From Phallusia mammillata (lineage: Eukaryota): a DNA stretch of 64,000 nucleotides. Of this stretch, positions 1 to 63,600 are shown piece after piece. The stretch covers positions 11,346,001-11,410,000 of the forward strand of contig OZ281494.1 in NCBI GenBank assembly GCA_965637545.1, written 5' to 3'. Below the pieces are notes generated by a model that saw only the letters and a list, made by a program, of their open reading frames with translations, ran no database searches and was not told the DNA's origin. Numbering within the stretch: the first letter of the stretch is position 1; every line of letters starts with the position of its first letter. The translations under genes were made by a program, and so were the position numbers.

Positions 1-3000
1 CGGTTTATGTACGATATGAATACAAAACCATACGTCTAAGTAAGATAAGGGAATGACCTAGAAGTTGTAATAGCGAACTGGGGTCGCTTGCATCGCACAA
101 GTTTAATCCAAACCCACAACGTCTGCGTCATATTGTTCAAACATTTCGCGGAATTGAGTTACGATTTGTGTAAGCTGCAAATTTGACTCTTCCGTAATAA
201 AAGAAAAGGGGACAAAGCCGCAAGACCCTGGGGGGTCAATTGTAAAACTTAATAGCGTTAAACATTAACGCCCTTGACATACAGGAAATTCGCAGCTAAG
301 ATGTGATTGGAATCCAGTAAATGCGTATTGTGTCAAGGGATTATCGTATAATTCCTAATTGCGTCCAGCAAGCCAAATGTCAAAAGGGAGAGACATCTAT
401 ATCATTGAGTGGGATTAAACGCCTTTGATCAGCTAATTGCGACGGGTCGTGCGTGCTTTGGTGATGCACACGAAACTATTGCGGTTAATATGATCAGTAT
501 ATGAGTTCTGTGGAAAGCAAATCCACACGTTCTAAAGTGCTTGGGCAAAGCCACAGTTTGACGACCAAAAATTCTGCATAAAAGGTTCAAGGTTTTCGTC
601 CAGCAGTCTAGCTAAATACCATGTCGACATTGGAAAGGCATAGAAACAAAACAAACTTAACTCAACTCAATATACACCTATACATCGAAAACTGTTAGCG
701 TAAATATTTTTGCAATTTTTCGACAACCTATCAGTCAAAAATAAACCAGTCTACAAAGGTGATCCATTTTAGGTTTTAAACTTGAATGTGGAACACTTAC
801 ACAGAAATGAATTTAATATTTACCGAATAAAAAGTGGCTGCATGAAAAAACTACACACATTACCTCATCACCGTTAATTTTTTTCAATCGAAATATAAAA
901 GCGAAAAAATTCGGACGTACAGAAATTACAGAAGGACGTACAGAATTCGCGAGCCAGACGATTCAATCGTCCCTTTTTCAGGTCGTCCAACGGGAAAGAA
1001 AAAAAGCATTAGTGCGTTGCTTCGACAGACCTCATACAAATAGGCTTACTTCAGTTGAGCTGAGCCAGAATGCCGGTGAACCTCAGTGACAGTCATTGGT
1101 TGCTCTTTGGATTTAGCTTGGAGTTGCTAATGTCAAACTCGGCAATTGTTGAATATGTGTAGTTCACGGTGTTATACCCTTGTACCTTTAACAGGGTTTA
1201 AGGTTTGGAGTACATTTGAAAGTTACTTTGAAACGTGTGGTTACCGCACTCTTGCGTTATTACGGTTTTGTTTGAGCAACAGACGTTTACGTGACTTTTC
1301 TACTTCAAATATCAACTGGATGTTATGTCTCTACGCCATGATTCGAATTCGGAACGCGGCGTTTTCAGCCCCGAGCGATGAAAGATGCAGCGCAGAATGG
1401 TGACGCGGTCAAAGCTTTTAGATGCAAAGGGCCGTAAAAAACGGTGTGAAATTTGTCTATTGTCGGAAATAGTGAGTTCAGAAAACATTTCAGAAATAGA
1501 AGCCGGAGTCGTTTAGGGGTTAAGGAAATGTGCCGACAAGGCTTGTCGTGCCGCGGGCGGTCGTGCAGGGTTTGACGGTCGCATCGAAAGCCGACAGTAG
1601 TGTTTGCACAACGCTGGAACTCCTGAACATCGTGTCGGTGCGCTAAAAGCTACGAAGTTCGGTGAGTCGTATCGGTAAATATGATTGACATATGCCCTAA
1701 TGTTGATATCGGCGAGTGCCCAGTCACTGCGTCTATGATTGCTGCGGTGGCGATTGTTTGCAGTAGTAAAAACTCGTGCGATGAAACAGCGTTTTGGGGC
1801 CAACGTTGGGGTGGATCGTGGCGCTTTCATGTTACCGCGTTTGTCGTTTCAGTGCAGAGCGTCCAGGCCACCGCGGTATGTTTATTTACGCCGGCCGCAG
1901 CGAAAGTAAGCAACAACAATCGAAGACTGCCACGCGTAAAAGTCGCTGCGGAAATTAGCCGGCGCGCTCGAGAAAAAATACAGGTCGCAGCCAAAAACCT
2001 CACAGGCGCATTACGTAAGGGCTAAGTATAGCGGCGCTCGACCGAGCACAAAAAGTCGCGGGTCATGGCCAGCCTGTTTTATCTGCCACAAATGGGTCGC
2101 GGCAACAAGGCAGGCTGAACGGTGCGGTCGGCTTCAATCCGCTTCGCTGCTTATTACACAACTTTCTTATCAAAAAGGCAGGCGCGTTTATTTAAATCCA
2201 GCACACGCTGGGTGACGTGTATGAGGTAATGTTTACTGTTTATTAAACGCACAGTCAAGTTCGCACACACGCGCAGGGACGCAAAGATTCAGTGCGCAAA
2301 AACGGCCATTCCAGCGGCTCTGCATAACAAGAAAACTGAAGAACGTTTGTTGAAAAGTCGCCGCTTCAGGTGGGAGGGCGCTATCAAAAGTCGCATCTCG
2401 ATTTTAGCGTCCGGCGCCTCAACGCCAAGGGCGTCTAAGAGATCGCAGCGCGTTTTGTCGCTGAATCTCTCGTGTTTGTGTACCAAACAACGGCTCACGC
2501 AAGCCAGTTCGTTCTGCGACCGGATTTACTGATCGAGGCGCCGCTTCCGCGAGATACAAATAATCGCGATCATAAGCTGCCCGCGAGATAGATAAGCGTT
2601 GCAAATCTAGAAGATGTTTTCGTTGCAGCGCGCCTCAGTGCAAAGGTAGCCTTCTGACTCACTGGCATCGTAAATTAATTTATCCTCGCGTGTTTGCTTG
2701 TGTTTGGATAAACAGCCCCCGCGAGCTGAAGCAATGGTGGCCGCCCGGAAACGAAAACAATACGTCATTGTCCAGGGTAATGATTTTACTTCGTGTTATA
2801 GGCGACATTGTCCCGACTGTGCTGTTCTCAGACGCCGACGGTATCGCTTTTTTGTCTCACGAAATTAATTGGACACGGCAACTTTGCGATATTCTCGCAT
2901 TGAGTCATCCGCCCCGATGCCTTTGTCGAAGGCCGCGGATTGCGTTACGGAAGCAACACGCCATCGCGCAAACAGCTCGACACTGCATTGTCTTGTGCCG

Positions 3001-3119
3001 TAATGGCTCGTTGCGAATACATAGCTCGAATTCACAGGTGTCAAAATTAATTACATAAAACAGCGCAGCGATGATGTACCAATATCGGGTTCCAAATTGT
3101 ACACGACGAAAGTTTTGTG

Positions 3120-3285
3120 TAACCGTGACGTCACAGGCTCCAGAGGCCTACCGGGGGCGACTGGAGGGTGTTGAGTTCTGCCGCCAGAGGCATGTTCGTC
3201 GTGTTGACGGTAGTTTGCAAGGGCGCGCACTTTACGCTCAGTTTGTGTGTGTTTTGTTCCCGTCCCATGCCACCCTGTGCGCCGG
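3120..3285 (+). promoter_or_regulatory. Possible ADAMTS promoter / non-coding first exon
   Basis: CRE palindrome GTGACGTCAC at 3125-3134, GC-rich segment ending in a donor-like CCGG|GTGAGA at 3286, and an acceptor TTATTCACAG| at 4529 upstream of the ATG. Inference only. Confidence 0.35.
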
Positions 3286-4704
3286 GTGAGAGTCAAAACA
3301 CGAAAGTGCTCCTGACGCCGCAGGAACGCTATGGACCAGCGGTCTGTGACTGCAACAAACAAACTCTTGGGGACCAGAAATTGTCTGTGATGCGAAGTTT
3401 TCGTGGAAATGATTGACCAAGTGAAATTTGGCGTAAATTGCCAGCTGCGCATAAGTGCCAGGCTTTATCACCCGGCTGGTGTACACAGTAAAAGTTTGCC
3501 AAACGCGGCAGACGCTTTGAAATCGATAGTTAACTTTCGTCTCGGCGCGACACAATACGCAGTCCTATCGGATCTCACCATTAATCAATTGGACCACGGC
3601 AATGTGTAGGGTATCAGGTGGCGCTGTGCTGAAAGAAGCTTGTTTTGTAATCGCGCCCTTTACAAGTCGCTGTTTCAGTAATCTGTTTGCGCCAAACAGG
3701 GCGGGTGGGCGAAGCGGAAACCACGATTACTTAGCCAAAGCTGTGATGGTCACAATTTAGCCGAAAGTTTAATCATCGTCTCAACGTCAGTTATTATCAC
3801 AAAGTAATTTAGGTTCGAATGTCAGAAACTGGCCACAATATGAATTAGCAACAAATGTGCTCGGAAGATTTAGCCGGAGGTAGCGAGCATCCAGTCAGGG
3901 CGACGAGGAGTCTCCAAGGGGTCATTGTGTTCAAAATAGCGGGTATAAAGTCGTCACGAGAGCCGGCGTCAGGCTATTAACCAAACAAGTTTACCAGGCG
4001 AAATCGGACGCGCAACGAGAAGTCCACACACGGCCGATTAGGTTTGTTGCCATTACGCATTGTTAATTTCAACGATTAAGTTTCCTTTTCTTTCCGAAAC
4101 AACAACTCATACGAAGACGTCTGGCGGGCGACAGGAACAATTATTGCCTGCCTTCGTCCGGTCCTTAAAACACCCAGCTTTATTTACGAGCGACAGAATT
4201 TGCCGCCACTGTCGTCGCTCGCCTTAAGTGGCTTAGTGTAAACTTTATTTTGACGCTTTGAAGCTATGAATGGACTTGGCCTTTGAGCCAAAACCGTACA
4301 ATATTTTGATTGGTTTAAGACGCTTTTCATGTGGATCCCTTGATTAAATCGTGCCCTCACGCGCCAGCGAGTTTATCTTGTGGATGAAAATAGTTCGCTT
4401 TATTTTCTCAGCAACAGACGGAACAATGGTACAAAAAGCGAAATGCGTCACTGTGTCTTATGTCATTGGCAAATGCGTGCCGAACCTGTACCATTGTCCA
4501 TCATATAACTGTATATTGTTATTCACAGGCTTAAAAACGACAATATAGCCTTCATAGCAAATATTACTAGCGAAATTGCATCACTGTTGAATGAGATTGG
4601 ACAAAAATTGATGACCCGTGAAGAAGACTCGCCAACGTTGATGTGCGAACAGTAAAGTCAACTTTCTTTTAACTACTTATTTATTCCTACAAATTCTTTT
4701 CATC

Positions 4705-7700
4705 ATGTGCACTTTATCCTCAATTTGTACGACCTGTATTATTATCCTATGTGCGGCCACGACGCTAGCCGTCAAACCGCTTCGTGTTGACGTCAAAGCT
4801 AACAGGGAAAAGCGTAATGCCGTTGATGTTGAGATCGTCACCCCGGTGCGCATGCAAGAAGACCTTTTGCAAATCGCAAACACGCATTTCCGCGCAAGAA
4901 GATCAGTTGTGTCGGAAGAGGATCTGTCAAAAGAATTCAGCAACCCAACGTACAAGATCCACGCGTTTGGGGAGGACCTCATGGTGCGTCTCGTTCCCGA
5001 CGACATTCTCGTTGCCCCAACATTCACCACCACATACGCGTGGAAGAACACATCGTCCCCGCGATCCTTGGATCATTCTTCGCAGCCCCAACTACGTAAA
5101 TGCTTCTACAAGGGTACGGTACTCGGCAAGCCCGGTTCCCAAGCCGTTATGAGCATTTGTGACTCCCTTACCGGATCGATTACCACTGGCGAATACCAGT
5201 ACACGGTCAGGTCCGCGGAAGCCACAAGCACTGAAGACCTGAAGCCTCATACTATCGAAAGGCGAAGCTTGTCTCGTGAACACAAACATGGAGCTCAATG
5301 CGGTGTAAAAGACTCAAAGCATCAGCCCCAGTACCAGGAGACATTCCTCCACAGTCCAATGGAAGAGGTTGTTAACACGGTGGGTTAAAGAAATCTTGTA
5401 ATGTTTGTTGCAATTAAACAAGGCTTAACAAATGTTTGAACATTGTAGGTTGTGAAACAAGTAAAGCGATCGGTCAGCAGAGAATCTCCTGAGCAAAACA
5501 TCATTGACTTCGAAAACTCAATGGGAGAGGAAAAGTCGCGACGGAAGCGCGATGTCTTTGAATCCCGCCAGCACTACATCGAAACCCTGGTGGTTGCCGA
5601 TGCAACTATGGCGCGAGAGCACGGAGATGACCTGGAACATTATATTCTCAGCATCATGATGGTGGCAAACCGTGTTTTTTCACACCCCAGCTTGGGCAGC
5701 GCCATCGCCCTTAGCGTTGTAAAGGTAAGTTTCAAACTGCCTCACGCGAACGATAAGGTAATACATTTTGTACTTGAACATTGTGTATGTGGACAGATTA
5801 TGGTCGTAGAAGATGAGCGCGAAGGTCCGGATGTCAGCACCAACGCTGCTGCCACCCTTCGTCAATTCTGCACATGGCAAAAGCGACACAACACTCCCGA
5901 TGACAGCCATCCCGATCACGCAGACTTGGCCATCTTGCTGACGCGCAAGAACCTGTGTGGAGACTCATGCGACACGCTAGGTGAGCATACACGACAAGGT
6001 TATGTCGCCTTGTTAGGTATAGCGTCTGCCCGAACTTTGTTGTTTACTTAAACAATCCGGTCGCGGTGCCTTTGCGACTTGTTGAAAGTGGAACACTGCC
6101 CGTGTAAGCCTTCTGCACGCTTGGCCAATCAACTCCTTAGCCCTGTGCAAACGAACGCGCACCGCAAACGCCCCACGTATCCTGCTAGGGTTTGCCAAAC
6201 TTTACCGGTTTAGTGCTGCTTTTACGGTAAATGATCAAAGGCTTTAGATACTCAATGCCCACGGCTTGCACAAAATAATAGTGAATCACTGGGCTACAGC
6301 GATTATGCGCCACATTTCTCCTGTTAACCACTAACTAACAGGCAAGCTAATTCTTGTTTTCTTTGCGCGTGAATTCCAATCGTCCCCCGACGCGGGTTTT
6401 ACTGACAGGAACAAGTTACTTGACGTCATAGAGGCTGTTATGACTTGATAAACGCTTGACAGGCGACCGCCAGCAGCGAACTCTACCCTAAATGGTTCAG
6501 TTTGGGTAGCCCCAAATTCTTTAGGCCGTTGTAAGCATCTCTTGTAACGCACAGTTAGCTTGTAACTATCTGGAGTTTTGGCATAATTGTTGTGACCCAA
6601 CTTCTACCCCAATGTTCAATCCGGGCTTGTTGGGTACGGCGTAACGCGGTTCGTTTAATCTCTGCAAACAATAGGGTCCATTCTTCAGGACCCGGGTCCG
6701 CGACCTGTCTTTGCTTTGCTCAGTTGCACTCTTGCGCGGCGCGTTGATGCACCCCCGGGACCAGGCGGTTAGTGTTGCATCTAAATAAGTCTTGCTAAAC
6801 GATGAATCACGCCCCGTTCCTTCCGAGGTTTCTGCATGCATCGTAAGCAGAGGACGTTCGGCAAAATGTCAGCGCCTCGGCTAAGTCAATCAAACTCAGC
6901 CCCCTTTCGCGGTTAAAACATGCCTGATTGCCACAAAGTCGAAAGCAAAACGGGGCGCCAACACTTGAAAGGCAGCGAGCGTCAATTTGCAACCAACTAG
7001 GCCCTTTGAAGGTCGCGAAGGCCACGTTAAGACACTGCCGAATGTAGCCTTTGAACAAACGGTTTCGCCGTAACCTTCTATTGCGCGGGATTTTCGACCC
7101 GTGGTAAACGGCGCCTTGGTGTTGATAACTCGATATTAGTGCGCGATGATATGCGACAGCTTTTCTGGTTGATATAGCGCGACCTTCAAATAAGCACCTT
7201 GGCGTCAAAACGCTTTGCCGTCCAGTGTTTGTCTTCATTCCAGGTTCTTTTACGTAATGTTACTTTTGTGCGTTTTCGACTTGGATAATATTTGCTTTCT
7301 GGTTTCTCATGACGTTACAACACGCCGTTGCCAAGGTGCTTATTTTGTGTCGACCACTTTTGATGTAAAACAGCTAGGGATACTCTTGTCTATGTAGTGT
7401 TTACGTAGTGACCAGGTGGTCGCGTAAGGAAGACAACGATTTGTTGCAGCTGTCAGGATTAGGCGCTGGCACACGCAACTCAATGGCCCGAGGTACTATT
7501 TCCGACCTGCGACCGATTAAAGCTACCAACGTCCTTGATAACTGCTCTTACGCTTCGATGCCGGTTAATCGCACTCGTATTTGATGCGCAACGACGAGGA
7601 AAATCCGCAACTTTACAGGAAGGGCCATAAAAGATGCGTCTCCTCCTTGTCGCTGGACTCTTTCCTGAGATCAAGCACAAGCGGACGCACCGGGCCAAAA

Positions 7701-10700
7701 CACACCACAGATTAAGAGCGTGGCCCTATAAGCGACAACCCTGCGTAACGTCTTTGATGTAGGTCAATAGTCCTAGTTAGTAATGGGTTAGGTGGGGCAA
7801 GTGCCCTTCACTCGTCAGTGATGCGATTGCGCCGTCGGAAGTTTACGCGCGTGTCGTATGTGGTCGATGACATCACAGCTGGGCTTAGTGTGTTTAAAGT
7901 CGCTTTAAGATTCGGTCCCTGGTTCAAAAGCTAATTAGCGTCGTAGCGACATCGGACCTTCAAATCGACGGCACTTGCAGCGCCCAAAATAGCTCGCCGG
8001 GGTCTTATCGGGCACACTTATCGCAAACTGAGCCATGCGCTTAGAGCGCTGGCAAATAAATAGGCACATCCTCAGGACCTCAAAAGATGATTTCAGTCCT
8101 ATTTTTATCAGCATGCTGTCGACAAAGGTCATTGACAGGAAACGTTTGCGATGTACCATATGTTGCGAAGTGCCAATTAACACCACCGCTGCGTCTTCGT
8201 GAAATGAATGGGTGAACCTCAAGAGTTACAATTAACTGCTACAGTAAAGCAGTAGTTGAGATTTCAATTGGTTGTTTGATCTAATCCATCTTGACTTGCA
8301 CGAAAGCGGTTTACGTCAAACTGATTGTTAACGCAAAAGCTCTCTCGATGATGTTAACCCATTAAAAATAGAGAATGAAGTCAACAGGGGTCGTTAACCT
8401 CGCAAAAACAAGTCTCAATTTCGTCTGCTAGATGATTCATGCGACGCCGTGTTTCAGGCAAAACACTGCAGTAATTGCTGGTGGCGCTACGTCATAATAT
8501 AAGTGTTTACCTGAACCGGGTACAAGGAAATAAAATGGTACCGTAGGTAAAGTTACATGTTACAAAACGGCAATTCGACTGAGTGGGTACGGAAGTGCGG
8601 CGGTCTGTGTAGTGTGGAACCCCCAGCTCAACCATTACCGGCGAAGGAAACGTCACATGCTTCACGACGTGAATCGAAGCGATCATTTCTATGTCCGGCG
8701 TCGAAAAATGACCCAGGGCGCGATTTTTAGCCCCATGACATCATCGTTCTTGCGGGTTCAACCTTACAGCGATGAATCAAGTTTTTTACCCGTTGGTGAA
8801 AAACAGAAAATTCTAACATCAGGCGCCCATGCGTGTTCAGATGGGATTAAGTGCACAGCAAACGAGCCTTAAAAGCTCGTTTAGGTACAAACATTACGTG
8901 CGGTGTGCCCCAAGGCGCTTATCCAAAAGCCAAAGAAATGCGCAACCGACCGCAAAAAGTGATAACTTCGCTCGTAACTTAACCACATTCCCGCAGTAAT
9001 TCCTTAAGTTTAACAAGAAAGTAACTAAAAATCATGAAACAAAGGCGCGATCCTAGCTAATGAAACTGACTACACAAACAGAACTGACATCTTCCAATGC
9101 CAAACGGATTACAAGCCAAGTAATCGAACCTCGGCAAGCTTAGTTCACCGCAAAACCCTGGTAAACGAATCAGAGTGGAACCAAAATGCTATTTTTACCC
9201 ACGAGGGGTGATCAAATTTAAACTTGCAAGCATATCATAAGTAGGGCTTTCGGCCAGCCACTAAAAACTTGAACCAAATTATACGGTTGGGCTTGAGGAG
9301 TTGGGGCTCAAACCGAGGCCTCAACGGCTGCGACAAGTGTTTCTCTTTTAACTCGCAGACTTGGCGAAGAACAATCGCTTCTTTGTGCTGCCGTGTGGTA
9401 CAATAATGCGCGCAATGCGATAATGCTGCCGCAGAAACAGTCGGGTGTGCCGCCTAAACCGTTGGTAGTTAAACACCGAGAAAGCAATTGTATCCCAAAC
9501 ATTTCTAGGGTTGTAATGCCCACATCTTTAACGGTTATCCGCTATTTGCATTTCAGGTATGGCAGAGGTCGGTACTATGTGTTCGGGGCTTCACAGCTGC
9601 GCTATAGTCGAAGACGATGGCTTGTCAGCAGCCTACACCGTTGCACATGAGGTAATATTCATATCAAACGAGCATCTGACAGCATTGAATTAGCATCTAA
9701 CTTATTAACTATCTTAGGTCGGACACGTGTTAAACATGATGCACGACGACAACGGTTTGTGTCAAGCAAACTTTGATATTGACCCCAAAACACACGTGAT
9801 GAGCGCAACGATGGACCGTGTCGATCGTGATCAGCCCTGGAGCTTGTGCTCTCGTCAAGCAGTCCTGGATTACCTGCAGGAAGGCCGAGGCAATTGTTTG
9901 TTGGATAGACCATCCCAACCTAAGGTACATATACAGGGTCATAGATGATAGGCGATTAGGGTTTGCAATGAGCCGTGCAAGATCACGATGACTGAACTGG
10001 ATAGGGCTTCGCGCCACACCGCAACTTTCAACGAAAAGAGATAGGGAAAAAGTGATTGACGTCACAACATGTTTGTGATTCGCTTATCGGGGCCAAACCA
10101 GTCAGTTGCCACAACAGTTTGGGAAGTGTGAAAAATAAACCCTCCTTGAGCGTGATTGATGGCTATCGGGTTCGCTGCTGCATAATACATCAGTGTGATT
10201 TGACTAAGATTAACTCTGATGCCAAAGATGCGATTGGCCAATCAGGATCGTTTCCGGATCGCATGAAAAACACCCGCACAATAGGAGCTATTGTCTTGCG
10301 GTAACCTCTTCGCGATAACCTTTCTGTGTATTACGACCAAGGCTAATTGCGAGGCACATCCGCACAACGCATGACTTGTTCCGTGCGGTTTAATTCAGAG
10401 GAAGTCGTCGCCGATTTTGGTGAGCGTAATTATCGCATCGCTTTTAATTCCCATGAACGGAGCGCGATTGGAGGCTTAACCGGCAATTGTTTTGTCGCAA
10501 CGAGACGCACTGTCTGCCTGGGTTACCATAGTTATGCCTTCAACAGGCATGGTTATGCCAACGCGGGTACACAAGAAGATAAGGCTGCTACAGTTCTAAC
10601 CTTTCACATTTTGTGACGCACATTGAAAAGTGGGACAAAGTTAGCGACACAAAAATGGTACCAGAGGCTTTTACTGCATGTTTGACCAATCTTAAGCAAC

Positions 10701-13700
10701 GAGTAGTAATTTAAAAAGCAGGTTAATGATCGACCCAAAATCCAACGCGCCGCCTTTTCGCTTTGTTACGACATAGACGCGTGCGAATCAACCAGCGTTA
10801 CACTGGCACTTTGGGACAAATCTAAAGTTTTTTTCACATTTCCATAAGGTTAACGAGCCGATCTCTGTTTGCCCGCAGGTCTACCCACGCGAGTTGCCTG
10901 GACAGATGTACGACGTCAATGCACAGTGCGAAATGGCGTTTGGCGAAGGAGCAGTGGCATGTCCGTACATGAACGAATGTGGGCGCCTATGGTGTCAACT
11001 GCCCAGCGGAACGTAAGTAGCTGTTGTCAGTTTTGGACCAGCTTACGCAAACGTGACATTTTTCTAACCTGTACTATGATTGTAACTACAGGCGAACAAA
11101 CAAATGCCACACAAGGAATTATCCGCGTGCAGATGGGACGCCCTGTGCGCCAGGAAGACACTGTTTGCAAGGACAGTGCCTACACAAAACGGCTCCAATG
11201 CAACCTATCGACGGTCAGTGGGGCTCATGGAGCTCATATGGAACATGCTCAAGGTAAGCATTCGCATCTTAAGCATATCACAAGCTAGTGAAGATTTTGA
11301 TTTTTAATTTCACCTGGTTGATTAGGACGTGCAGTGGTGGCATCCAGATGTCAAGCAGACAATGCAACAATCCCAGTCCCCAGCACGGAGGCCAATACTG
11401 CATGGGCGACCGACTTCGTTTCAACAGTTGTAATAACCGCAAGTGCCCGAAGGTGAATGGCAAGGAACCAGGCGATTTCCGCAGTGAACAATGCGCTTCC
11501 TACAACGGACAACATATTCCATTGCTGGGACCACGCAACAACTACTCATGGATACCAAAATACGTGGATGTTCACCAACGAGACCGTTGCAAGCTAATCT
11601 GCCAGTCAGTGCAAACTGGTGCCTACATCACTTTGGCCGACCGCGTGGTCGACGGCACGAGGTAAGAGCACTGCTCAAGTTTGTTTTGCGCAGGGTGGGA
11701 AGGTGTTGTCTGTTTGCATAGCCGTGACTTTGTGCCTCTCTGTTCACAGATGCGGTCCCGATACGGCGGACGTGTGCGTTCACGGCCAGTGCATGCCTGC
11801 AGGCTGCGACGGTGTGCTCAACTCTAAAGCCAAATTCAACAAGTGCGGCGTGTGCAACGGCGACAAGTCGACCTGCAAACGCGTTCGAGGTAAGTGTCCT
11901 ATAAAATTGATATCACTTCTGATGCGACCGATTTCTCCCACGACGATATCTTGCGTTGAGGCTGTGGGTGTCCTGTTGCCGCGTGTGTAGCTGAAGTGGG
12001 GCCGCACGCCGCTGCCGTCTATCTGACCGAATAAGGGGACGGGACGAGGCAACCGCTAACTCCGTCGCGTTTGTGGCATTTCTTTCGCTCTGCGCCGAAA
12101 AAAAAACGTACGCACGATCCGGAACGACCTTAGCAATGCTCGTGCAGAAATTAAAGCACCCTAAAACGGTTACTAAAGTGATACGAATGCCGACTTCAGA
12201 CCCCATGGCAGTCAGCAATCGTGTGTACTATTCAACAAAGCCGCTGTTTTGACAACAAAAGACAGGCGAGCGTTGAGAAAGCCAGATATGTCACCGTCTC
12301 GCTAAACGGAGTGACAAACGGCCTAAGGATTTGCCGCAGTTTGGCAACGTCAAGTGACAGGCCGCATTTGGAATAGCGATGTCTATGAGCAATTGACAGT
12401 CCGTGAAAGCAGCAACGCTAAGTAATCCATTTCACCTTGGTGGCCAACCAATGGCGCAGTTGGTTTCCCGAATGCGCCCAATGATAATCAACAGTCGAGA
12501 CCGGGTTGGGTTTTGGCTGCAGCAAGACAACACCCACAAACCGCATTTTGTTTACACATGAAAGTCACGCTTGACCCCGATTGGCGTAGACATCAATTTT
12601 TCCACCTCATGTTTATCCACATACCGCGGGGCGAGTTATATATAGATCGCGCAGTGGGTTCTCATAAACTCGCCAAATCTGAGTTGTCACAACGGCGCAT
12701 TACAAACCGGAAAACAAGTAGTTACAACGAAGGCAAGGCAACCTGAACGGATTTAGCATTCAAACCTCGGTCGCGTAATTAGAACGGTCAAAATGGCGAG
12801 GACGGGTCACTGAAACCCGCCTTAACCTCTACACTGACCCGTAGCAGAATTGCGAGCTGACCACAGTTTGCTCATGGGATAAACAGCGCTTTCTGGGTGG
12901 CGCCTGTCGTATAACCGACGAAGATCGGCACTTCAGCCGTTAGCTCTTTTAGTTACCTCCTTCTTCGCATAGTTTTGTATCGCATCATTCTTCATGTGAT
13001 GTAGTGAACAAGGAATTAGAAGCCAAACCCGTTCGTGACATTTCGGGGCGTAATTTAACGTGTTAGGCAAATTGTTACCGGACTCACCCTATATTTTCAT
13101 ACAAGCGCTTTACGCTTCATTTGCTTTCCAGGTAAATACAACCGACGCAGCCCCGGGTACAATGACGTCATCACACTGCCTGTCGGCGCCGCCAACATCA
13201 AGATCACGCAGAAAGGTTATCGTAAGAACATCTACGATGGCAACTACCTTGCCCTACAAAACAGCAGAGGAGAATACATCCTCAATGGAGCGCTTACGTT
13301 GATCACCATTGCCAAGGACATTGAAGTTAACGGTAAGAATTGTTAACAAGTTGTACAGTAAACAGCTTTTTCGTGAAAATGGTCTTAAACATGCATGTTT
13401 TGTTATTATACAGGATCAGTCATTCAATACAGCGGCGTAAGCAAAGTGACTGAGCGCATTCACACCACTATGCCCTTGAAGGAGGCCATCAAGCTTCAAG
13501 TACTTAGCCTTGGTATTCGTGGATCAGATATCGCACCGCCAAGCATCAGATACCGATATTACATCTCGGTTCCGCGCCGTGCAGCAGCCAGACGAACAGG
13601 GGTACGTGATATTGAAATAGGATGTGTATTTACTTCGATAAAACATTTGACTCAATTTAAACTTTAAGTTTTTTCGTTCAGGTCAAGCCCACGGTATTGC

Positions 13701-15618
13701 AACGATCGACCGTTTCACACAAAGTCAAAACTACCAAGGCTTCACGCAAACACCAACCTAGATGGGTTGCTGGCCGATGGAAGAAATGCCGATCCCAAGG
13801 CAAACAACAGTGCGGATCTGGTTGGAAAACAAGAATTGTTTCCTGCAAAATCGGAAAACGCGTCACAACTGGGTAAGTTTAAACTATATTTTTGAAACTG
13901 ACCAAAATTATAGACTGGTTTTGTTTCCGCTTAATTTTACAAGACAGATACCTTATAAACAAAGTGGGATGAAAGGAAAAACGATACATTTGAACACCAT
14001 TAAATGCGTATTAGCCCTTGTCGTTCAAAAAGTTTCGGAAATTAAAACCACTAACGAGTTTAAATGGCGCGTGCACTTCGCTTAAACATGGCCCGCAGTG
14101 TTATATCCAACGTGTCAGGAGTATCACAAAAACACGCTTCGGGTCACCACTTCACTTTCTGCGAGAACCTGCGATTAAGTTTTTGCCTCAATTGCGTTGC
14201 CCCAAGGTCATTAGTTTCAAGTGTATCATTGTGCTCGCTTAGCAACCGATGTGTGGGAATGGGAGGCTGAAAAGATATCGTTTTCTTGTTGTGCATTGTG
14301 GTTACAACCCTCTCACGCGCCACGCGCAGGTCGATTGAAGCTGTTTACGAACAAGTAGAAAGACACAGTTGGTGATGAACAGATGAGTCGCCCCCTAATA
14401 CCGGTGACTTAATTGCTTCAGCTCGCTACAATAAAAGAACGTGCGCGGTAACGCGGCTGTAAAGTCGAGACGCAAAAAACATGAAAAAGAAGTAACTTAA
14501 TCGACAATGGGTTTTGTGAAATGTTTGACTCCCAGAGCCTCACCAACAATGCCAGCAAGGGTAGGCGATAGTTCGAACCATGTTCTCACCGCATGTTATT
14601 GGCCAGGGTGACATGTTTTGCGCTCCCACACCAAGCATCAATTCGCGGTTGATCTAAAGCGGCCCGACATGCGCTTAGCGACTTAAGGCCAGAGAAACGT
14701 CGACTGATCTGTTTGTGGTTAAATCAACCTCCGGTCGCGTAATAATAACAGCAATGCGGTCTTGGTGGCAATCCGGCCGGAAGTTTTCGAAGGTCGTTAT
14801 TTGATTTACTCGTCATATTTATGTCACTGTTGACAGTTACAAAATAACATCGGCTTCACCAGGACATTTCAATTGCTTTGCCTCGCGATCTCTAGATACC
14901 TGGTTAATACGTAACCAGTGGCGCCCAGGGACTGTCTGGTTTTCTAATTGGGGCTTTGAATGCGGCAAGGCGCAAGAGATGTGCGTAATTGACATTTAAA
15001 ACCAGCGTCCGCTACCGTTGCAAAACAAACCACTACACAGCAACTGAGTGCGCTTGGATGAAAAATGGAGGATAACTTTTCCCACACATATCGTTCAATT
15101 TAAAACATACGGGCGTGTGAATATTTCAGATATCACACCAGTCATCAAGTTGAACGTAAAAATTATGCGACCGCAGTACCGTCAAGAAAACTAGCACACC
15201 CTCCTTGCGCACCGGTGGCCCGACCACAAACAGCCCCTTTTCAGAGTTTTGTTGAATGTGTGGTTTGCGAACTTTGCACGTATGAAAAAACTAACCAGTA
15301 TCTATCTTAATTTCCAGGTGCAACCCAGACATCAAACCCTACGACACCTTGCCTTGTTTCATCAAAGCTTGTCCCACAGTGCAGCCTCGACGCCGATTTC
15401 CGACTCAAGACAGCCAGCCAACTATCGTGAACCGCTACAACTACGCCTTCTGGAACGCCGGGTCATGGGGCCCTTGCTCAGCGTCATGTGGGCTTGGCAC
15501 CAAAATGCGCATTGTCAAATGTCAGATAAGATCAGGCCGTTTGGTCGCTAACTCAAAATGCGATGCCGGTCGTCGACCATCCGAGCGCCACGGCTGCAAG
15601 CTGCGAGAGTGTCCGTAA
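4705..15618 (+). CDS. ADAMTS: ADAMTS metalloprotease (ADAMTS1/4/5/8/15-like architecture), 13 exons, ~1029 aa
   Basis: Exons 4705-5379, 5449-5724, 5797-5980, 9557-9651, 9718-9924, 10879-11012, 11092-11253, 11326-11661, 11750-11889, 13132-13332, 13414-13601, 13682-13872, 15318-15618; all GT-AG, phases compatible, total 3090 nt. Signal peptide, prodomain with CGVKD cysteine switch, RRKR furin site, zinc motif [12 protein letters not shown] (N in place of G as in ADAMTS1-type), Met-turn HVMS, disintegrin-like, TSR ([17 protein letters not shown]), Cys-rich, spacer, two C-terminal TSRs. Exact paralog not assignable. Confidence 0.95.
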
Positions 15619-16591
15619 GGACGAATGAGGGAACAATCCGGAAAGGATATCTAAGTAAAGGAAAATGAGTTGAGCATTGGCTCAGTGCTGCTAGAAACAG
15701 CGGAGAAAGCGGCATCAGAAGGAGGGAAAGAACTCATGCGTGTGGTGCATGTCACATCCACGTACACTGTAGAAAGTTAGTTGGCTATCGAGGGCCGGTG
15801 TTAAAATGTCTACTTGCCCTGCACTGTTAAAGCACTGTGTCTGTTTTTTCTTTCTGTTATTTGTTTCGTATTTATTCGCGTGTAGATTCGTGTGCTAACG
15901 ACGCGACTTTACGCTAGTGCACGCCTTCATTGCAACCCACATAATTTATGCTTTTTCGAACATGTTCCTTATGTACAATTTCTTTTATTCTCCTCTCCAC
16001 TTGCCCATGTCCTAAACGGTATTCTTTTGTCACGGTAGAAAGCCTCCAGCCAAACTTTTTGTTTTGCGTCACGCAAATTCCTACAGTAGACCCTTGGTCT
16101 ATTCAGAAAAAAACGTTCGAACCCAAAACCAAACACGTTACAATTTTTCGACAAGTGGACATTATTTCAACTGGATTTTCATGTTTTTAATTGCGCCAAC
16201 AAGCGCTGCAAGCAGACTAGTGTGTTCGTGTGTGTTAAAAAACTGTTTTTAACCGTACTATATTTTTAGCGCGCTCCTCATTCTTAAGGTGCTACATATA
16301 ACCTCGAAATGCCGTTTACTTCTTCAACACAAAAACGAACAGTCTTCTTACTAACGGCGCCATACCCTTAAACGTCGTGCGTCCAATTAGGCAAAATTGC
16401 CTATGTACTTATCCTTTAGTAAATATATACATGTTTAGGTCCTACGAAACTATACTATTCAGTTGTTGGACTGTAAATCGCCTATTCGTGCCTATTTAGT
16501 TTTGTTTTGCCTTTGTCATGCGTGAACTTGTGCCCTTTTTTATTTATAACGAAGAAAATATTTTCATACAACTTTCATACAAAACAACTCC

Positions 16592-22025: not shown

Positions 22026-23876
22026 ATGGATGATTGTTGCTTCTTTTCGATGGTTTTGGAACATTTGCAGGTAACTGAAGTGACAAATCAGAAAATATTG
22101 TTAAGCCTAAACTGATTGATAAACAGAAGCACATGTTTCAACATGCAATTTTGACGGAAAAACTTTTTTTTGTTTCACAAAGGACAAAATTAAATACTTT
22201 GGATTAACATCCTTGAATAAGTATATTTTGTGGTATTTGTACCTTATAGTTCTAACTACTGCATGTCAATTGTGAAATACTTTCCTACTTTCTAGACACA
22301 ACACAAGACACTCCACAAAGTCTTTGGGGAGTTTCAAAATATTTCAAGAGTACCTGTTTCACAAGAATGCAAATTTGGACTTACCAAAATCATGTTTGAT
22401 GTTGGCAAAATGTTTCAGCAAAACAAAAACCTCTTGCAACACTTTAAAATGTACCTGAAGTGCAACCAGTGGAAAAATGTGCAATTAAATCCTATGCTTC
22501 TTTCAACAAGCATAAACTGTAATGAAACCTCTGCTGCAACTGCTGATAGAAAAGATCTGGAAATAATTAAATCTGCTATAGAGGTACCAAAGAATGTTAT
22601 GTTGCAATACCACCATAAAACTCAAAGTAGCATGACAAGTTTTGTTCTAAACACAAACCCACAAGCTGTATTAGGCAATAAATTTCCAGCTCCACACACT
22701 TTACCATTACCTTCTGAGACTCCTTGCTTTGATGAAAGTGAGCACTCTACTTCAAGTTCTGATGTTTTTCATGCAAGTCCCCCTGTTTTAAAACTACCCA
22801 ACATTGAGTTTGGGGATGTTGGTACTGTGGATCGCAATCAATTTGAGGGCCCTGTTGTTAATAACGCCAGACCAGTTTTAGCATCCTCAAAGTCAGACCC
22901 AAACAACAGTCCGGGTAAAATGCAGAAGCATTCTTCTAAAGAAAGATGGTTAGTTTTGTATTGTAACTAGAATTTGCTTATGATTACAATCTAAATAAGT
23001 TAAAAATAAAAAAAAAACTTTTATAAAAGCTTGTAGAAAGACTGATGATGGCATGAGCATTTGCCGAAACGTTTGAACAATAAAGCATGTCGCTTTTTAC
23101 GTCTATTTGGGCCGTTATTTTCACCATTAAACTTTTAGAAAGAATTTAGTGGAAACTTTGAATTACTACATTTCTTTGTGCAGTAAAACGGATTCTGACT
23201 TACACAATCATAATGAAAATGATGTATGTACCTCTTCACAATCTGCTGCATCATTTTTTGTTGGACCCCCTCTCAGCACCAAGTGTAAGTTTGTGAACAT
23301 TGATTTGTGCAATTGTTTATTATTTTTATTTTTTATAATTTTATTTTTTTTAATTATTTTTCCATAACATGAAACTACATCCTTGTTGTTTAGGTTTACG
23401 AAATGTCTTCAAAACATTTATAAAAACTCGACTTCCACAACAAAACTCTTGGTTCACCTTTATAAGATTTGGCCTGGAACTTTCCGATCAAGACATCAAT
23501 CACATACTGGAAGATTTTAAGGATAATGCTTTTGCCAGGAAATTTTCATTGCTTGAAAAGTGGGCAGAGGGTATGTACAGGAATTGTATTAGTATTTTAC
23601 AATGTAGGGACAGAGAATTATAGACCTACTTGGTGGGTTTACTCATCACTCATCAGGATGCTGCCACAAATGTATTGTAAACAATCAAAGATAGATGCTG
23701 AAGAGTTGATTGGATATGTAGTCATACAATAAGTTGGAAATAAATATCTGTTAGAATGACAGTTGTTACAGTTTTGGTGTGTAACCATATGATATTCTAT
23801 TGTTGTAGGGAAAACTTTTGAAACGGAAGACGAGGTTATGAATCTACTGGATGCAGCATGCAGAGCATCGATGTAA
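22026..23876 (+). CDS. Putative spliced gene or pseudogene: N-terminal PAH/harmonin-homology-like helical domain, S/T/P-rich linker, C-terminal death-fold domain
   Basis: Exons 22026-22070, 22296-22914 (or -22948), ~23150-23284, 23394-23570, then 23608- and/or 23809-23876. MDDCCFFSMVLEHLQ|TQHKTLHKVFGEFQ...IMFDVGKMFQQNKNLLQHFKMYL fits the PAH pattern (V..LF..H.DLL..F..FL); WFTFIRFGLELSDQDINHILEDFKDNAFARKFSLLEKWAEG fits a death domain. The junction into the ~23140 exon is ambiguous (22948->23139 creates TGA; 22914->23150 is open). Confidence 0.55.
23030..23100 (+). mobile_element. Penelope-like retroelement terminal remnant with hammerhead-like core
   Basis: CTGATGA(T)-GGCA/loop/TGCC-GAAACGTT followed by AATAAA at 23079; stem I not intact. 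Confidence 0.4.
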
Positions 23877-57656: not shown

Positions 57657-60600
57657 ATGAATTTTGCCAAACATGTTTTGGTAATGCTTGTGCTGTTCAT
57701 TAGTGCAAAGCATTCAAGTTCATTAGACACATCACATCCCGGACAACTACTTAATGGTGAAGTATTTCCTCTGGATAAAAGAAAATCTTCTGAAGTTACA
57801 CAACAATTGGGGGATACACCCATTTCTTATTCAGACAAAGGGTTGCACAATGCTAATGAAAACACATCAATTCATGTTTCTGAAATTCCGAATGAATATA
57901 TTGTTGTGTTTGATGGTTATTACACTCAGTCTGATCGGAAGAATTATGTTGAAGAAGCAATGCAGTCCATGTACATCAGTGATAAGCAATGGGGAATTAT
58001 GCCTCGTTTCAATCCTGCACAAAAGTTTCCAAGTGATTTTGATATTCTTCAAGTTCATCCAAAGATTAAGGCCAAGGCATGTAACAACTTTCACAGCACT
58101 ATGTGTGTCACTAAAAGATATGCTATTTTGAATATTTTTAGCAGGAGATAGTTTCTGACTTCTTATGAGTAGACAATTTTCTTTTTTTCCACAGGACATT
58201 TTGACCAAGTTAACTCACCACCGAATCAAAAGCATATCTACCCAGAAACTGGTTCACTGCAATATGTTGAGCTTTAATGAGAATGATGCCAGACCAGACA
58301 TACAAAATACCAATGAATCACATTTGATACGAAAATCACGCCAACTTTCTGTAAACAATGAACGACACATGAACAAATTATCACTGAAGTCCCACTCCAG
58401 AGCACCACTGAAGGCTATTCCGAAACAGGGGCAAATCACACAGGTATGGTATAGCAGATTTTGCTGAAAACCTTGGAAAGTTGGATATTTTTGAAGGTGA
58501 AAAACTGTATGGCTTAATAATGGTGTGTCCACATTTTGAGTATTGTCTACTTTGATACTTTTTATGGGTCCCCTTCCCTGAAGGGGACACATATTGTTTT
58601 TGTCTATATATTTTTTTTCTTTCTAACGCAGATTTGTTCCCACGTTTTGGTCAAGAAAGGATGGTTCAAACTTTTTCAAATTTACACACATTAAAGATAT
58701 TGGTCTAAAGATGGTCCATGTAAATTTTGACCCCGTTTGATCCCCCGGTTCACCCACAGCCCCCCAAAACGTGAAATTTTTAGCGCGGCTATTGTTCCCA
58801 CGTTTTGGTCAAGAAAGAATGGTTCAAACTTTTTCAAATTTACACACATTGCAGATATTGGTCTAAAGATGGTCCATGTGAATTTTGACCCCGTATTACC
58901 CAGAGGTTCACCCATAGGCCCCCGAAACATAAATGTGTCTAACGCCCGTTTGGTCAAGAAAGACACTGTAGGCAGAAGTACCAAGAGAGTAACTCACTGG
59001 TTTACGATAGCGGGAGGGCTCAGCTTGACGTCGGACAGACGTTTTACGAGACGTCGTTTCAGTGATTAGAAATCAGCTGTTTTGCACAGCAATGCTATGT
59101 CGTTTTATTAAGTGGTCACTCACATTTTCAGTTTTGACGAAGGTTTTACACCTATGACGTGATTTAAACCTAATAACCGTGCTTCGGTTTTGTATATGTC
59201 AAGAAAAACTTTGTTAATAAAAGTTAAGATGAAAAAATTAACTTGAGTTTTGCCAAATAATTGTTTTTTTAAATGCTCGTTGTCAGGTTGGCTGCCGCAT
59301 GATCACGGGTTACTTAAGGTCAACTAGTCGGTATTACAAACACAGCTCAGAACTTTCTTCATAACGTAGCGTTTTTTTGACAATTAATTAAGGAGTCAAT
59401 ACTCAAGGCATGTATAAATTAGGCTTAACAGTATCGTTGAACACGAATGACGGCGTGCTATTGAAAACGGTGTCAAAAGGTCAAACAGTCGTTTGGCGTG
59501 TGCACCCTGAGAGGTTACTACTGGTCAATGGTACTCGTTTTGCGAAACAAAGTTAAATGAAAAACAATTACTTATGTATACACTTGTAGCAAATTGCTTT
59601 TTAATTTAAAGTGTCTGTAACACAACTGTTACAGCTTTCTAAAAAAATTGTGTTCAAAACCCGACCTTGGAGGACTATATCTGGGTCAAAGCAAGAGATT
59701 AGATTTAAGTCTTTGTTACGTTTTTTTAATTTTGTAATTACATGACAATAATAGTGCAAAAAGAATACGAACAATTTTTTTTTATTGTTGGGTTAATGCT
59801 TTCTAAAAATTTGTCCTTAAGAATGTAAAAATCACCGCAACATTTGTTTACTGTAAATCCGCACAAACGCGCGTGTGGGGACCCATCAGTTTTTGTTTAC
59901 AAAAACAATCATATGTGTAGATCAAATGATGTGTATAGTTAATTAGTAAATATCGTATAGAATATATAAAATGGAAGTATATCAGAAAGCCACTCTTCTA
60001 GTTTCAAATGTAAAAAAACATCGATTTTGAGTGCCTAAACTGCCCTAAAAGATGGACATTTGGACCCCCTCTGTTGCAACAGTTAATAAATATTTGCTTA
60101 AGATATAAAACAACCTTTCTCGTGTTGCAGTTACTCCAAGCGCCTCGCTTATGGGAATCTGGATATACAGGCAAAGGTGTCAATGTTGCAATATTTGACA
60201 CCGGCCTACCTGTCAATCATCCTCACTTTAAAAATATCAAGGAAAGAACAGATTGGACAGATGAAAAAACTGCTGATGACGGTTTGGGACATGGCACTTT
60301 CGTTGCCAGTGTTATTGGTGGTTCATACCAGGACTGCCCTGGTCTTGCACCTGATGCAGATTTGTTCATTTTTCGGGTTTTTACTAATAATCAGGTAGTT
60401 TAATGGTACCTTCTGAATTATATATTTAACACCTAAGAATTTGCCAAATTTTACACCTTTTTTGGAGTCAGAAATGTCAACCTTGGGCATTCTAATGTTA
60501 AGTAAGCTATTGTTTGTAGTGTAGCCATTTTCTCTCAGAATTTAGCGCTTTTTATTGGTGAACAGGATGTCATGAATTATTAACCTACCACACTACACCA

Positions 60601-63600
60601 TCAATTTATTTTTACAGCCCAAATGGAATTGCTAATCTTTTTTGTGTGTATGTATCTGTATTTAAACACAAAATCTTTTTTTCAGGTTTCATACACATCT
60701 TGGTTTCTGGATGCTTTCAACTATGCCATTCTCAAGAAAATGAACATTTTAAATTTAAGTATTGGTGGTCCAGATTTTATGGATCAACCATTTGTTGAAA
60801 AAGTGTGGGAACTGACAGCCAATCACATCATCATGATATCAGCTATTGGAAATGATGGTCCATTGTATGGTAAGCTGAAAAGACAAACCCAAAAGTAGTG
60901 CTCACAGTACACCACATACGTGGGTGATATGCATCATGATTTTTTTTAGATAACAAGGCTGAACATGTTTACATTCCGCTTAGATTGTATCACCCAAAAA
61001 TTATGCCCTAATAATATCTCAATTGAAATTATACACCTGAAGAAAGCTTACTACCTATTGTAGATTTGTACTAATTTGCTCTGACTCATTTTTTAACATA
61101 ACTGGTACATACAGAAAACATATTTTGTACTAGATTCAAAGCAACTCAATAAAATGCATGAAATTGGTGTTTTTTTAGGCACTTTAAACAACCCAGCAGA
61201 CCAGATGGATGTAATAGGTGTTGGTGGGATTGATTACAATGACAACATAGCTCGATTTTCATCAAGAGGGATGACTACTTGGGAGCTGCCTGCGGGGTAT
61301 GGAAGATTGAAGCCTGATATTGTCACATATGGTTCCACAGTTCGTGGCTCTGGCCTTCATGGAGGCTGCCGTTCTTTGTCTGGCACAAGTGTAGCTTCAC
61401 CAGTGGTTGCTGGTGCAGTTGCTTTGCTGTTGAGTTCTACCAAGGAAAAGACCAACAGGCAGTTGATTAACCCAGCCAGTGTGAAGCAAGCACTTATGGA
61501 GTCGGCTGAACGATTGCCAAAAGCCAACATGTTTGAACAAGGTCAAGGCAAGTTGGATCTTATCAAGGCTTACCAGGTACAGTTGCATTGTATTACCAAT
61601 ATTTATGGGTCCCCTTCTATGAAGGGGACACATATTGTTTTTGTCCGTATTTTTTTTTCTTTTTTCTGTCTAACGCTGGTTTGTTAAACGCGTTTAATTT
61701 ATTAAAATTTGGACAGATGTTACATATTAATCCAAATTTGATCCTCCTAAAGTTTGACCCCGAATGACCCAGCGGTTCACCCACAGGCCCCCAAAACGTA
61801 ATTTTTTTAAAACGGCTGTACTGACTAAAGTACATCATCTAGGAGTTATGTGCTCTGTTGGTTGGTGCAATGTCAGGTTTTCTAAAGAATTTTCTAACTT
61901 TTAACAGGATTTACCCATTTTTACGCCTTAAACCCCGAAATAATCATTTCTGTCGAAAGCTGGTTTGTCAAACGCGTTTGGTCAAGAAAGAATGCTTTAA
62001 ATTTATTCAAATTTACACAGATGTTAGCTATCGTTTTAAACCTGATACTCTTAAAGTTTGACCCCGAATGACCCAGCGGTTCACCCACAAGCCCCCAAAA
62101 CGTATTTTTTTTAAAACGGCTGTACTGACTAAAGTACATGATCTAAGAGTTTCATGCTTTGTTGGTTGGTGCAATGTAAAGTATTCTAAATAATTTTCTA
62201 ATTTTTTATTGGATTTACCCATTTTTACTCCTTTAACCCCGAAATAATCGTCACCCCTTAAATCCCGAAATAATCTTTTTTGGTTTTAGGCCAGAAATAC
62301 AAGCCCTAATGTGCTGAAATTTGAAACATTTGTTTGCAGTGGTTTACTCGTTTAGTATTCAAAAATTTGCCTTAATCGGCTAAATAATGACTTTCACAGC
62401 CCATAGTTCGTGTACACCGTCAGTCAGACAGAAGTCCCAAGGGAGTCATTCACTGGTTAACGATTAAAACGGTTTTGTGCAGAGCGGGAGGGATCAGCTT
62501 GATGTCCGGACAGACGTTTTAAGAGACAGTCTTTTCGGTGATTAGAAATCAGCTGTGTTTTTTTCCCTTAAGAATCTAAAAATCACCGCAACATTTGTTT
62601 GCTGTAAATCCGCACAGACATGCGTGTGGGGACCCATTAGTTTTTGTTTACAAAAACAATCATATGTGTAGATCAAATGATGTGTATAGTAAATTGGTAA
62701 ATGTCGTATAGAATATATAAAATGGAAGTATATCAAAAAGCCACCCTTCTAGTTGTTCTAGGTTTTAATCACAGCATCCATGTTTATCCTTGACTGTGAA
62801 ACATTGTTTTGTTAAACAAATGTTTACTTTTGTATAAATCCAATAAATTGTATATTGTATTTGTGGACCAACGGAGTGCAATTTAAATTACAATTTCATG
62901 CATGAAATCCCTATTGTTTGCATTGTTTGTTCAGAAACTTTTTAACTGTGTGTTCTAATCTGGATACTGTACATGACTTTAACCATGTATTTTTTACAGG
63001 TTTTGAACTTTTATGAACCACAGATCAGTTTGGTTCCAAGTTACCTTGATTTCACTGAATGTCCATACATGTGGCCGTACTGCACACAACCACTCTACTA
63101 TACTGGAATTCCAGTAACTGCAAATGTTACAATAATTAATGGCATGGGAGTTGTGGGAAAAATTAAAAGTCCTCCTGTGTGGCATCCATATGCAATGCAA
63201 AATGGAGACAAAATTCAGGTTAGACAAGAAAATGTATGCTTTATATTGAAGTTGTAGCTACAAGAAATCTGTGGAAGAGCAATATCATTTATAAAGTTTG
63301 TAACATGTACAACATAAATTTTTAACCAGGAAAATATATGAAGAAAATATATATATATTTGTAATAAAGTATAGAACTACCTCTTTAAATAAAACAAAAC
63401 TAAAAAAACAGAACTGAAATTGTTTTGAGCTTTTAACATTAATGACAACAATTTTGTTTCTGTTGTTCAATACAGGTTTCCTTTTCATATTCAGAAGTGC
63501 TATGGCCTTGGTCAGGCTACATGGCTTTATCAATATCAGTAAAAAAGCATGCAGCCAACTGGGAAGGCATTGTGCAGGGTCATGTTGAACTTACAGTGAC

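Follow-up and report, generated by a model that had tools for sequence, protein, structure and literature searches.

Does the genome of the ascidian Phallusia mammillata encode a protein that joins a PAH-like module, of the kind by which Sin3-type corepressors dock, to a death domain, a module from which signalling complexes of cell death and immunity are built? The question is raised by a candidate gene on the forward strand, at positions 22026-23876 of a 64,000-nucleotide stretch of contig OZ281494.1 (assembly GCA_965637545.1, positions 11,346,001 to 11,410,000). This whole stretch is called the window below, and plain coordinates refer to it. An earlier note, made from the letters of the sequence, had described an N-terminal PAH/harmonin-homology-like pattern, a linker and a C-terminal death-fold pattern, together with several caveats. 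Our analysis retains the linker and the death fold, and finds no support for the PAH domain. We conclude, with a probability of about 70%, that the gene encodes an ascidian-restricted, adaptor-like protein with a conserved helical head, a disordered linker and a diverged C-terminal death domain.

Gene structure and transcript support

The locus is an intact, single-copy, ascidian-restricted, five-exon protein-coding gene. Its exons are phase-compatible, as had been proposed, and form a chain between exactly the same start and end, with an ATG at 22026, a TAA at 23874-23876 and a product of 347 residues. Every splice site is GT-AG; the intron phases are 0/2/1/1 and the intron lengths 225, 235, 109 and 238 nucleotides. 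Exon 1 (22026-22070) consists of the ATG and 14 codons (MDDCCFFSMVLEHLQ) and ends in phase 0 at the donor CAG/gtaact. Exon 2 (22296-22948) follows the acceptor ...ctactttctag, with an in-frame TAG directly upstream, and comprises 217 codons plus 2 nucleotides. Its first part (22296-22472) forms, together with exon 1, a conserved N-terminal helical module of about 74 residues; the remainder (22473-22948) encodes the first and larger part of a low-complexity linker, rich in Ser, Thr, Pro and Asn and containing short conserved islands. Exon 3 (23184-23284; 1 nucleotide, 33 codons and 1 nucleotide) carries the second part of the linker, beginning KTDSD. The predicted death-domain helices 1-4 are encoded by exon 4 (23394-23570; 2 nucleotides, 58 codons and 1 nucleotide), and the last helix and the stop by exon 5 (23809-23876; 2 nucleotides, 21 codons and TAA). 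Towards the 3' end of the transcript, the nearest AATAAA stands at 24679.

A word-index protein search with exon 2 led to a single protein, CAB3255689.1 (A0A6F9DFQ8) of Phallusia mammillata, 300 residues long and named "Protein Red-like"; across this search and one made with the family alignment, the word index brought up only this protein and a Clavelina protein. Exon-by-exon mapping of CAB3255689.1 showed 99% identity to the window from the Met at 22392 to the stop, with one Phe/Leu mismatch. The latter lies at 22445, in codon 18 of CAB3255689.1, and is probably a polymorphism. The junctions between exons 2, 3, 4 and 5 are the predicted ones (Cys, Cys and Gly): the TGT codons on both sides of exon 3 correspond to residues 186 and 220, and the GGG codon between exons 4 and 5 to Gly279. 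Since CAB3255689.1 uses these junctions, the linker and the C-terminal domain share one message and do not belong to separate transcripts. For the same reason, the gene model needs neither the splice choice creating a TGA nor the 37-nucleotide intron that had been listed as caveats.

In PMC7237864, a transcriptome of embryos assembled de novo, each peptide received the name of its top BLAST hit in Ciona robusta, and the pipeline retained the longest peptide that two or more assemblies shared. The naming style of CAB3255689.1 would fit such an origin. The gene is not mentioned in the text of the MorphoSeq supplement.

Relatives, copy number and selection

We searched 1.84 billion representatives of all protein lengths exhaustively with phmmer and obtained five matches. 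Among them, XP_076816482.1 of Clavelina lepadiformis, a 360-residue "uncharacterized protein", is laid out in the same way, with a helical head, a middle part rich in Ser and a C-terminal domain that shows 41% identity to its Phallusia counterpart. Two genomic contigs of run DRR090687, evidently from another ascidian, each hold part of an ortholog, one with exons 1-3 and the other with exons 4-5. The C-terminal domain recurs in a more distant form (P0006) in an exon at positions 7088-7420 of locus L004, on a 12-kb contig of the metagenome JGI sample 3300002516. This animal-like contig has repeat-rich flanks and no Pfam matches on record for its called genes, and may be host DNA of another tunicate. 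The fifth match (P0005) is a repetitive protein and was rejected as spurious. Relatives were thus found in ascidians only, in agreement with the lineage-specific gene that had been suggested, and the family seems to be confined to certain lineages of ascidians.

The exon plan is common to Phallusia, Clavelina and the DRR090687 ascidian, with a 15-codon exon 1 and phases 0/2/1/1. The phase-0 first coding exon lies at 228-272 of locus L005 in the DRR090687 ascidian, with the same GTAACT donor, and at 10001-10045 of locus L013 in Clavelina. Exon 4 has exactly 58 codons and a split Gly codon in all three species, and exon 5 is equally long in the second DRR090687 contig (L006).

Six-frame searches of the whole 240-Mb assembly matched exon 2 and exon 4 at this locus only. 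Two weak additional matches were examined as possible paralogs and discarded: C2:15259707, matched by the death-domain exon, proved to be an unrelated exon of helical type, whose DUF7931 match falls below threshold, and C7:1948569, matched by the head profile, is a low-complexity frame with a stop. The gene is therefore single-copy.

We calculated the proportions of synonymous (pS) and nonsynonymous (pN) differences, and the ratio of the corresponding rates (dN/dS), in comparison with the ortholog from DRR090687; saturation at synonymous sites makes the dN/dS values approximate. The head part of exon 2, 48% identical between the two species, gave a pS of 0.75, a pN of 0.34 and a dN/dS of 0.10; the whole of exon 2 gave 0.74, 0.45 and 0.21 (with L005), and exon 4, 69% identical, gave 0.63, 0.19 and 0.15 (with L006). 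Exon 5, with 21 codons, is too short for such a reading. With pN well below pS, both ends of the protein are under purifying selection.

Within locus L013 (OX392444.1, 436075-459803), the Clavelina ortholog lies between CD20/MS4A-like and TSTD2-like rhodanese genes and adjoins a kinesin gene; the window shows none of these neighbours. A tblastx comparison of this locus with the window matched the death-domain exon alone, with no common neighbours within 10 kb, and local synteny between the two loci is not kept.

The C-terminal domain and the linker

Residues 215-300 of CAB3255689.1 were modelled with AlphaFold2 together with three relatives. The model has a mean predicted local distance difference test score (pLDDT) of 88.9, a predicted template modelling score (pTM) of 0.80 and five helices assigned by DSSP; in a model of the full-length Clavelina ortholog, the C-terminal domain has six helices. 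A Foldseek search of the PDB with the C-terminal model gave death domains for all of the best 21 matches listed (ranks 1-23), from FADD, RIPK1, PIDD/RAIDD, ankyrin, TNFR1, THOC1, TRADD and p75NTR, with probabilities up to 1.0, template modelling (TM) scores of 0.55-0.67 and E values of 0.07 and above. Likewise, the ESM Atlas returned death-domain clusters (PIDD, ankyrin, Fas, FADD, CRADD and RIPK1) in 10 rows out of 10, with PF00531 in most of them.

Altogether, three search methods yielded nearly pure lists of death domains across the whole domain of 73-79 residues. In the structure-based match lists, the DD (death domain) subfamily stands clearly above CARD, DED and PYD, at sequence identities of 16-23% in the structural alignments with death domains. 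At the level of profiles, hhalign aligned the domain with four canonical death-domain exons of the same genome over 37 columns (helices 2-4) in the right register, with an E value of 4.9e-4 and a probability of 32%, both alignments being shallow. The predicted structure is a compact helical bundle that can be superposed on solved death domains. On the strength of these models, the death fold that had been recognised by eye is upheld, and we conclude that the C-terminal domain is a sequence-diverged death domain of the DD subfamily.

The linker agrees with the earlier description of about 190 residues rich in Ser, Thr and Pro: it is 191 residues long in Phallusia, with 29% Ser+Thr+Pro, and 193 residues long in Clavelina, with 33%. 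The prediction is one of disorder, with pLDDT below 50 in the Clavelina model, and the linker contains a few short conserved islands such as TSFVL-TNP and EFG-G...EG-VV.

Points against the assignment and the start of the protein

Several results weigh against the reading of the gene given above. No match to the Pfam Death profile (PF00531) was obtained at E <= 10 for the exon pieces or for any family member, and a whole-genome scan with PF00531 at E <= 1 recovered 21 other places and not this locus. PDB sequence and profile searches, with CAB3255689.1 and with the death-domain alignment, were blank or returned noise. The assignment of the fold depends on an AlphaFold model made with only four sequences, and the Foldseek E values are weak. 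No relative was detected by phmmer among the 1.84 billion representatives in Ciona, stolidobranchs or vertebrates, and therefore a pathway is not transferable by orthology. Finally, CAB3255689.1 starts at the Met at 22392, without exon 1 and the first 32 codons of exon 2, so that translation of the N-terminal 47 residues in Phallusia mammillata is inferred from conservation only.

The last point opens an alternative in which the functional protein of embryos has Met 22392 as its first residue, owing either to an internal start or to spliced-leader trans-splicing at the 22296 acceptor. Its head would then be cut to about 27 residues, and the product would approximate a long disordered arm followed by a C-terminal death domain, like EDARADD or IMD. 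The deposited protein itself begins there, and the pipeline of PMC7237864 retained, of the peptides that at least two assemblies contained, the longest. An in-frame TAG stands right at the 22296 acceptor, and Met 22392 is kept in the DRR090687 ortholog. Spliced-leader trans-splicing is, moreover, in wide use among ascidians. Against this start, an ATG-initiated, 15-codon, phase-0 exon 1 is kept in three species, two of which have the GTAACT donor in common, and the full head is present in the Clavelina RefSeq model. The 32 codons between the 22296 acceptor and Met 22392 are open and about 39% identical to the DRR090687 ortholog (counted by hand on the alignment) at saturated synonymous sites, which would not be expected of an untranslated leader at such divergence. 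Because of this identity, the open frame and the purifying selection, exon 1 and the 32 codons are probably translated, and we regard a start at Met 22392 as unlikely.

The N-terminal helical head

The structure of the head was modelled in the Clavelina ortholog, with modest confidence (pLDDT 65-70), as two long helices spanning residues 4-34 and 37-72. When this model was searched with VIA-align (50 rows) and Foldseek, the matches were generic hairpins of helices, among them prefoldin, designed bundles and ESCRT-III; neither the 50 VIA-align rows nor the listed Foldseek matches included Sin3, harmonin or CCM2. Feature searches of the ESM Atlas with both heads yielded nothing usable, and a PDB search with the head alignment gave noise, for instance designed helical proteins, interferon-gamma and syntaxin. 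The head is a conserved, helical segment of about 74 residues that can be placed in no known family and probably forms an antiparallel hairpin of helices.

The earlier note had seen in it a four-helix pattern of the PAH or harmonin-homology type; as a bundle of this type, the head would couple death-domain signalling to Sin3-type, amphipathic-helix-binding partners. The residue pattern of the head is indeed PAH-like by eye, and hhalign pairs MFDVGKMFQQNKNLLQHFKMY with IARVSHLFNGHPDLIVGFNTF, in helices 3-4 of PAH1 of the genome's own Sin3, in the expected register. Furthermore, glycines and polar runs could split the two long helices into four, and the sole structural model of the head is the one of modest confidence described above. 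These points are outweighed by several others. The hhalign pairing has a probability of 0.6%. The Pfam PAH profile (PF02671) matched no family member at E <= 10; a scan of the whole genome with PF02671 at the same threshold listed the Sin3 exons and a locus at C6:5578236, and not this gene; conversely, a genome scan with the head profile did not reach Sin3. The structure searches yielded generic hairpins and the Atlas searches nothing, and Clavelina does not conserve the PAH-like Phe positions. The residue pattern first noticed is thus seen by hhalign, at that very low probability, and the model of the ortholog shows two helices rather than four. We consider a PAH or harmonin-homology head very unlikely, and since neither profiles nor structure searches support a PAH-like head, the proposed link to Sin3-type partners is not supported either.

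The PAH domain shares with the head a length of about 70 residues, an all-helical nature and, in the second half, a similar hydrophobic spacing. The two differ in showing no significant similarity by profile, profile-profile or structure comparison, and in that the head of the Phallusia protein's ortholog is modelled as two long helices where Sin3 PAH (PF02671) and harmonin-homology domains have four short ones. A second PAH-bearing locus, outside Sin3 (G000:C6:5578236-5578358, reverse strand; L014), encodes nearly a whole PAH domain in one exon, scoring 20.9 bits, or 27.4 with its neighbours in frame, and is possibly GON4L-like.

Two further alternatives concern the C-terminal domain and the locus as a whole. 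The former could be a generic small helical bundle that AlphaFold has shaped into a death-domain-like form, in a gene unrelated to death-fold signalling. We find this highly improbable given the near-pure lists of death domains obtained by three methods over 73-79 residues, the standing of the DD subfamily above CARD, DED and PYD at 16-23% identity, and the correct register of the hhalign alignment to canonical death-domain exons. The locus, in turn, might be a pseudogene, the cargo of a transposon or a set of open frames lined up by chance; the AT-rich region, where open frames come easily, and otherwise the caveat of the earlier note alone could be invoked for this. It can be dismissed in view of the single copy, the stop-free exons, the match to a deposited messenger RNA-derived protein, and an exon plan kept with pN < pS in other ascidians.

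Proposed role and comparison with known systems

For the gene read as encoding a helical head, a disordered linker and a C-terminal death domain, the product would most likely act as an adaptor of the bipartite, death-domain type. Through homotypic DD-DD contacts, its death domain would enter assemblies with a receptor, kinase or adaptor that bears a DD, and the head would recruit or cluster a second component, by partner docking or by self-association, the long linker being a possible regulated tether. This mechanism is put forward because death domains act in this way in FADD, CRADD, TRADD and their relatives. What the data establish is the gene structure and its conservation, the common transcript of exons 2-5 and the death fold; the adaptor role, its partners and pathway, and a possible oligomerisation of the head are inferred. 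The adaptor-or-decoy function suggested in the earlier note is plausible. In a more specific version, the head would be an undescribed interaction or oligomerisation domain, perhaps an extremely diverged PAH-type module, linking DD assemblies to a partner without a death fold such as a transcriptional corepressor. Ascidians would then possess a private death-domain adaptor, within a broader, lineage-specific rewiring of their death-fold signalling. We hold this version to be unlikely.

FADD, CRADD/RAIDD, TRADD and EDARADD are likewise small, cytosolic proteins without catalytic domains and with a death domain at one end; in bipartite adaptors, too, a flexible segment connects this end to a second module at the opposite one. 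Indeed, the death domains of FADD, of the TNFR1/TRADD/RIPK1 complex and of RAIDD/PIDD are the best structural matches of the Phallusia domain. There are several differences. The linker of FADD and CRADD is a few residues long, whereas that of the Phallusia protein has about 190. The Phallusia head is not a DED, a CARD or a TRADD-N domain, having no Pfam match and only hairpins as structure matches. Finally, the Phallusia death domain is too diverged for Pfam, and its family has been found in ascidians only.

Identity with FADD was considered and rejected: FADD has a DED followed directly by a death domain, and the Phallusia protein has no DED match. A DED scan of the genome found C4:19071370 (caspase-8-like), C2:3547039 (FADD-like) and weaker places, and not this locus. 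Ciona is reported to have its own FADD-like gene (PMC10923776).

No living animals are more closely related to vertebrates than the tunicates, which appear to have heavily reshaped their cell-death and innate-immune adaptors. The gene described here contributes a death-domain protein that escapes standard domain profiles and is misnamed or left uncharacterised in public databases. A corrected entry, together with the recognition of a small ascidian family with a conserved head, should aid the census of chordate death-fold signalling. The gene is also a short and tractable target for screening interactions in embryos of Phallusia and Clavelina. The finding opens no long-standing question.

Database annotation and neighbouring genes

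The name "Protein Red-like" attached to A0A6F9DFQ8 would imply that it is Protein Red, or IK. This identity was rejected: the Pfam search detected neither RED_N nor RED_C in the protein, and Protein Red / IK has no detectable likeness to it. The true RED_N gene of the genome lies elsewhere (G000:C4:19509629-19510315, E = 8.7e-91). The name fits a transfer from the best Ciona BLAST hit, as made in the PMC7237864 pipeline.

Two other coding regions were observed in the window, both on the forward strand. At 57657-61687, open frames match the C-terminal half of subtilase (Peptidase_S8) with an E value of 6e-19, and the region is probably a site-1-protease or kexin-type gene. At 4705-6051, two long open frames match the reprolysin (M12B) propeptide (E = 9e-14) and, weakly, the reprolysin catalytic domain, and look like an ADAM/ADAMTS-type metalloprotease gene. 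The block from 1 to 16000 has a guanine-plus-cytosine content of 45-50%, against 33-39% in the rest of the window.
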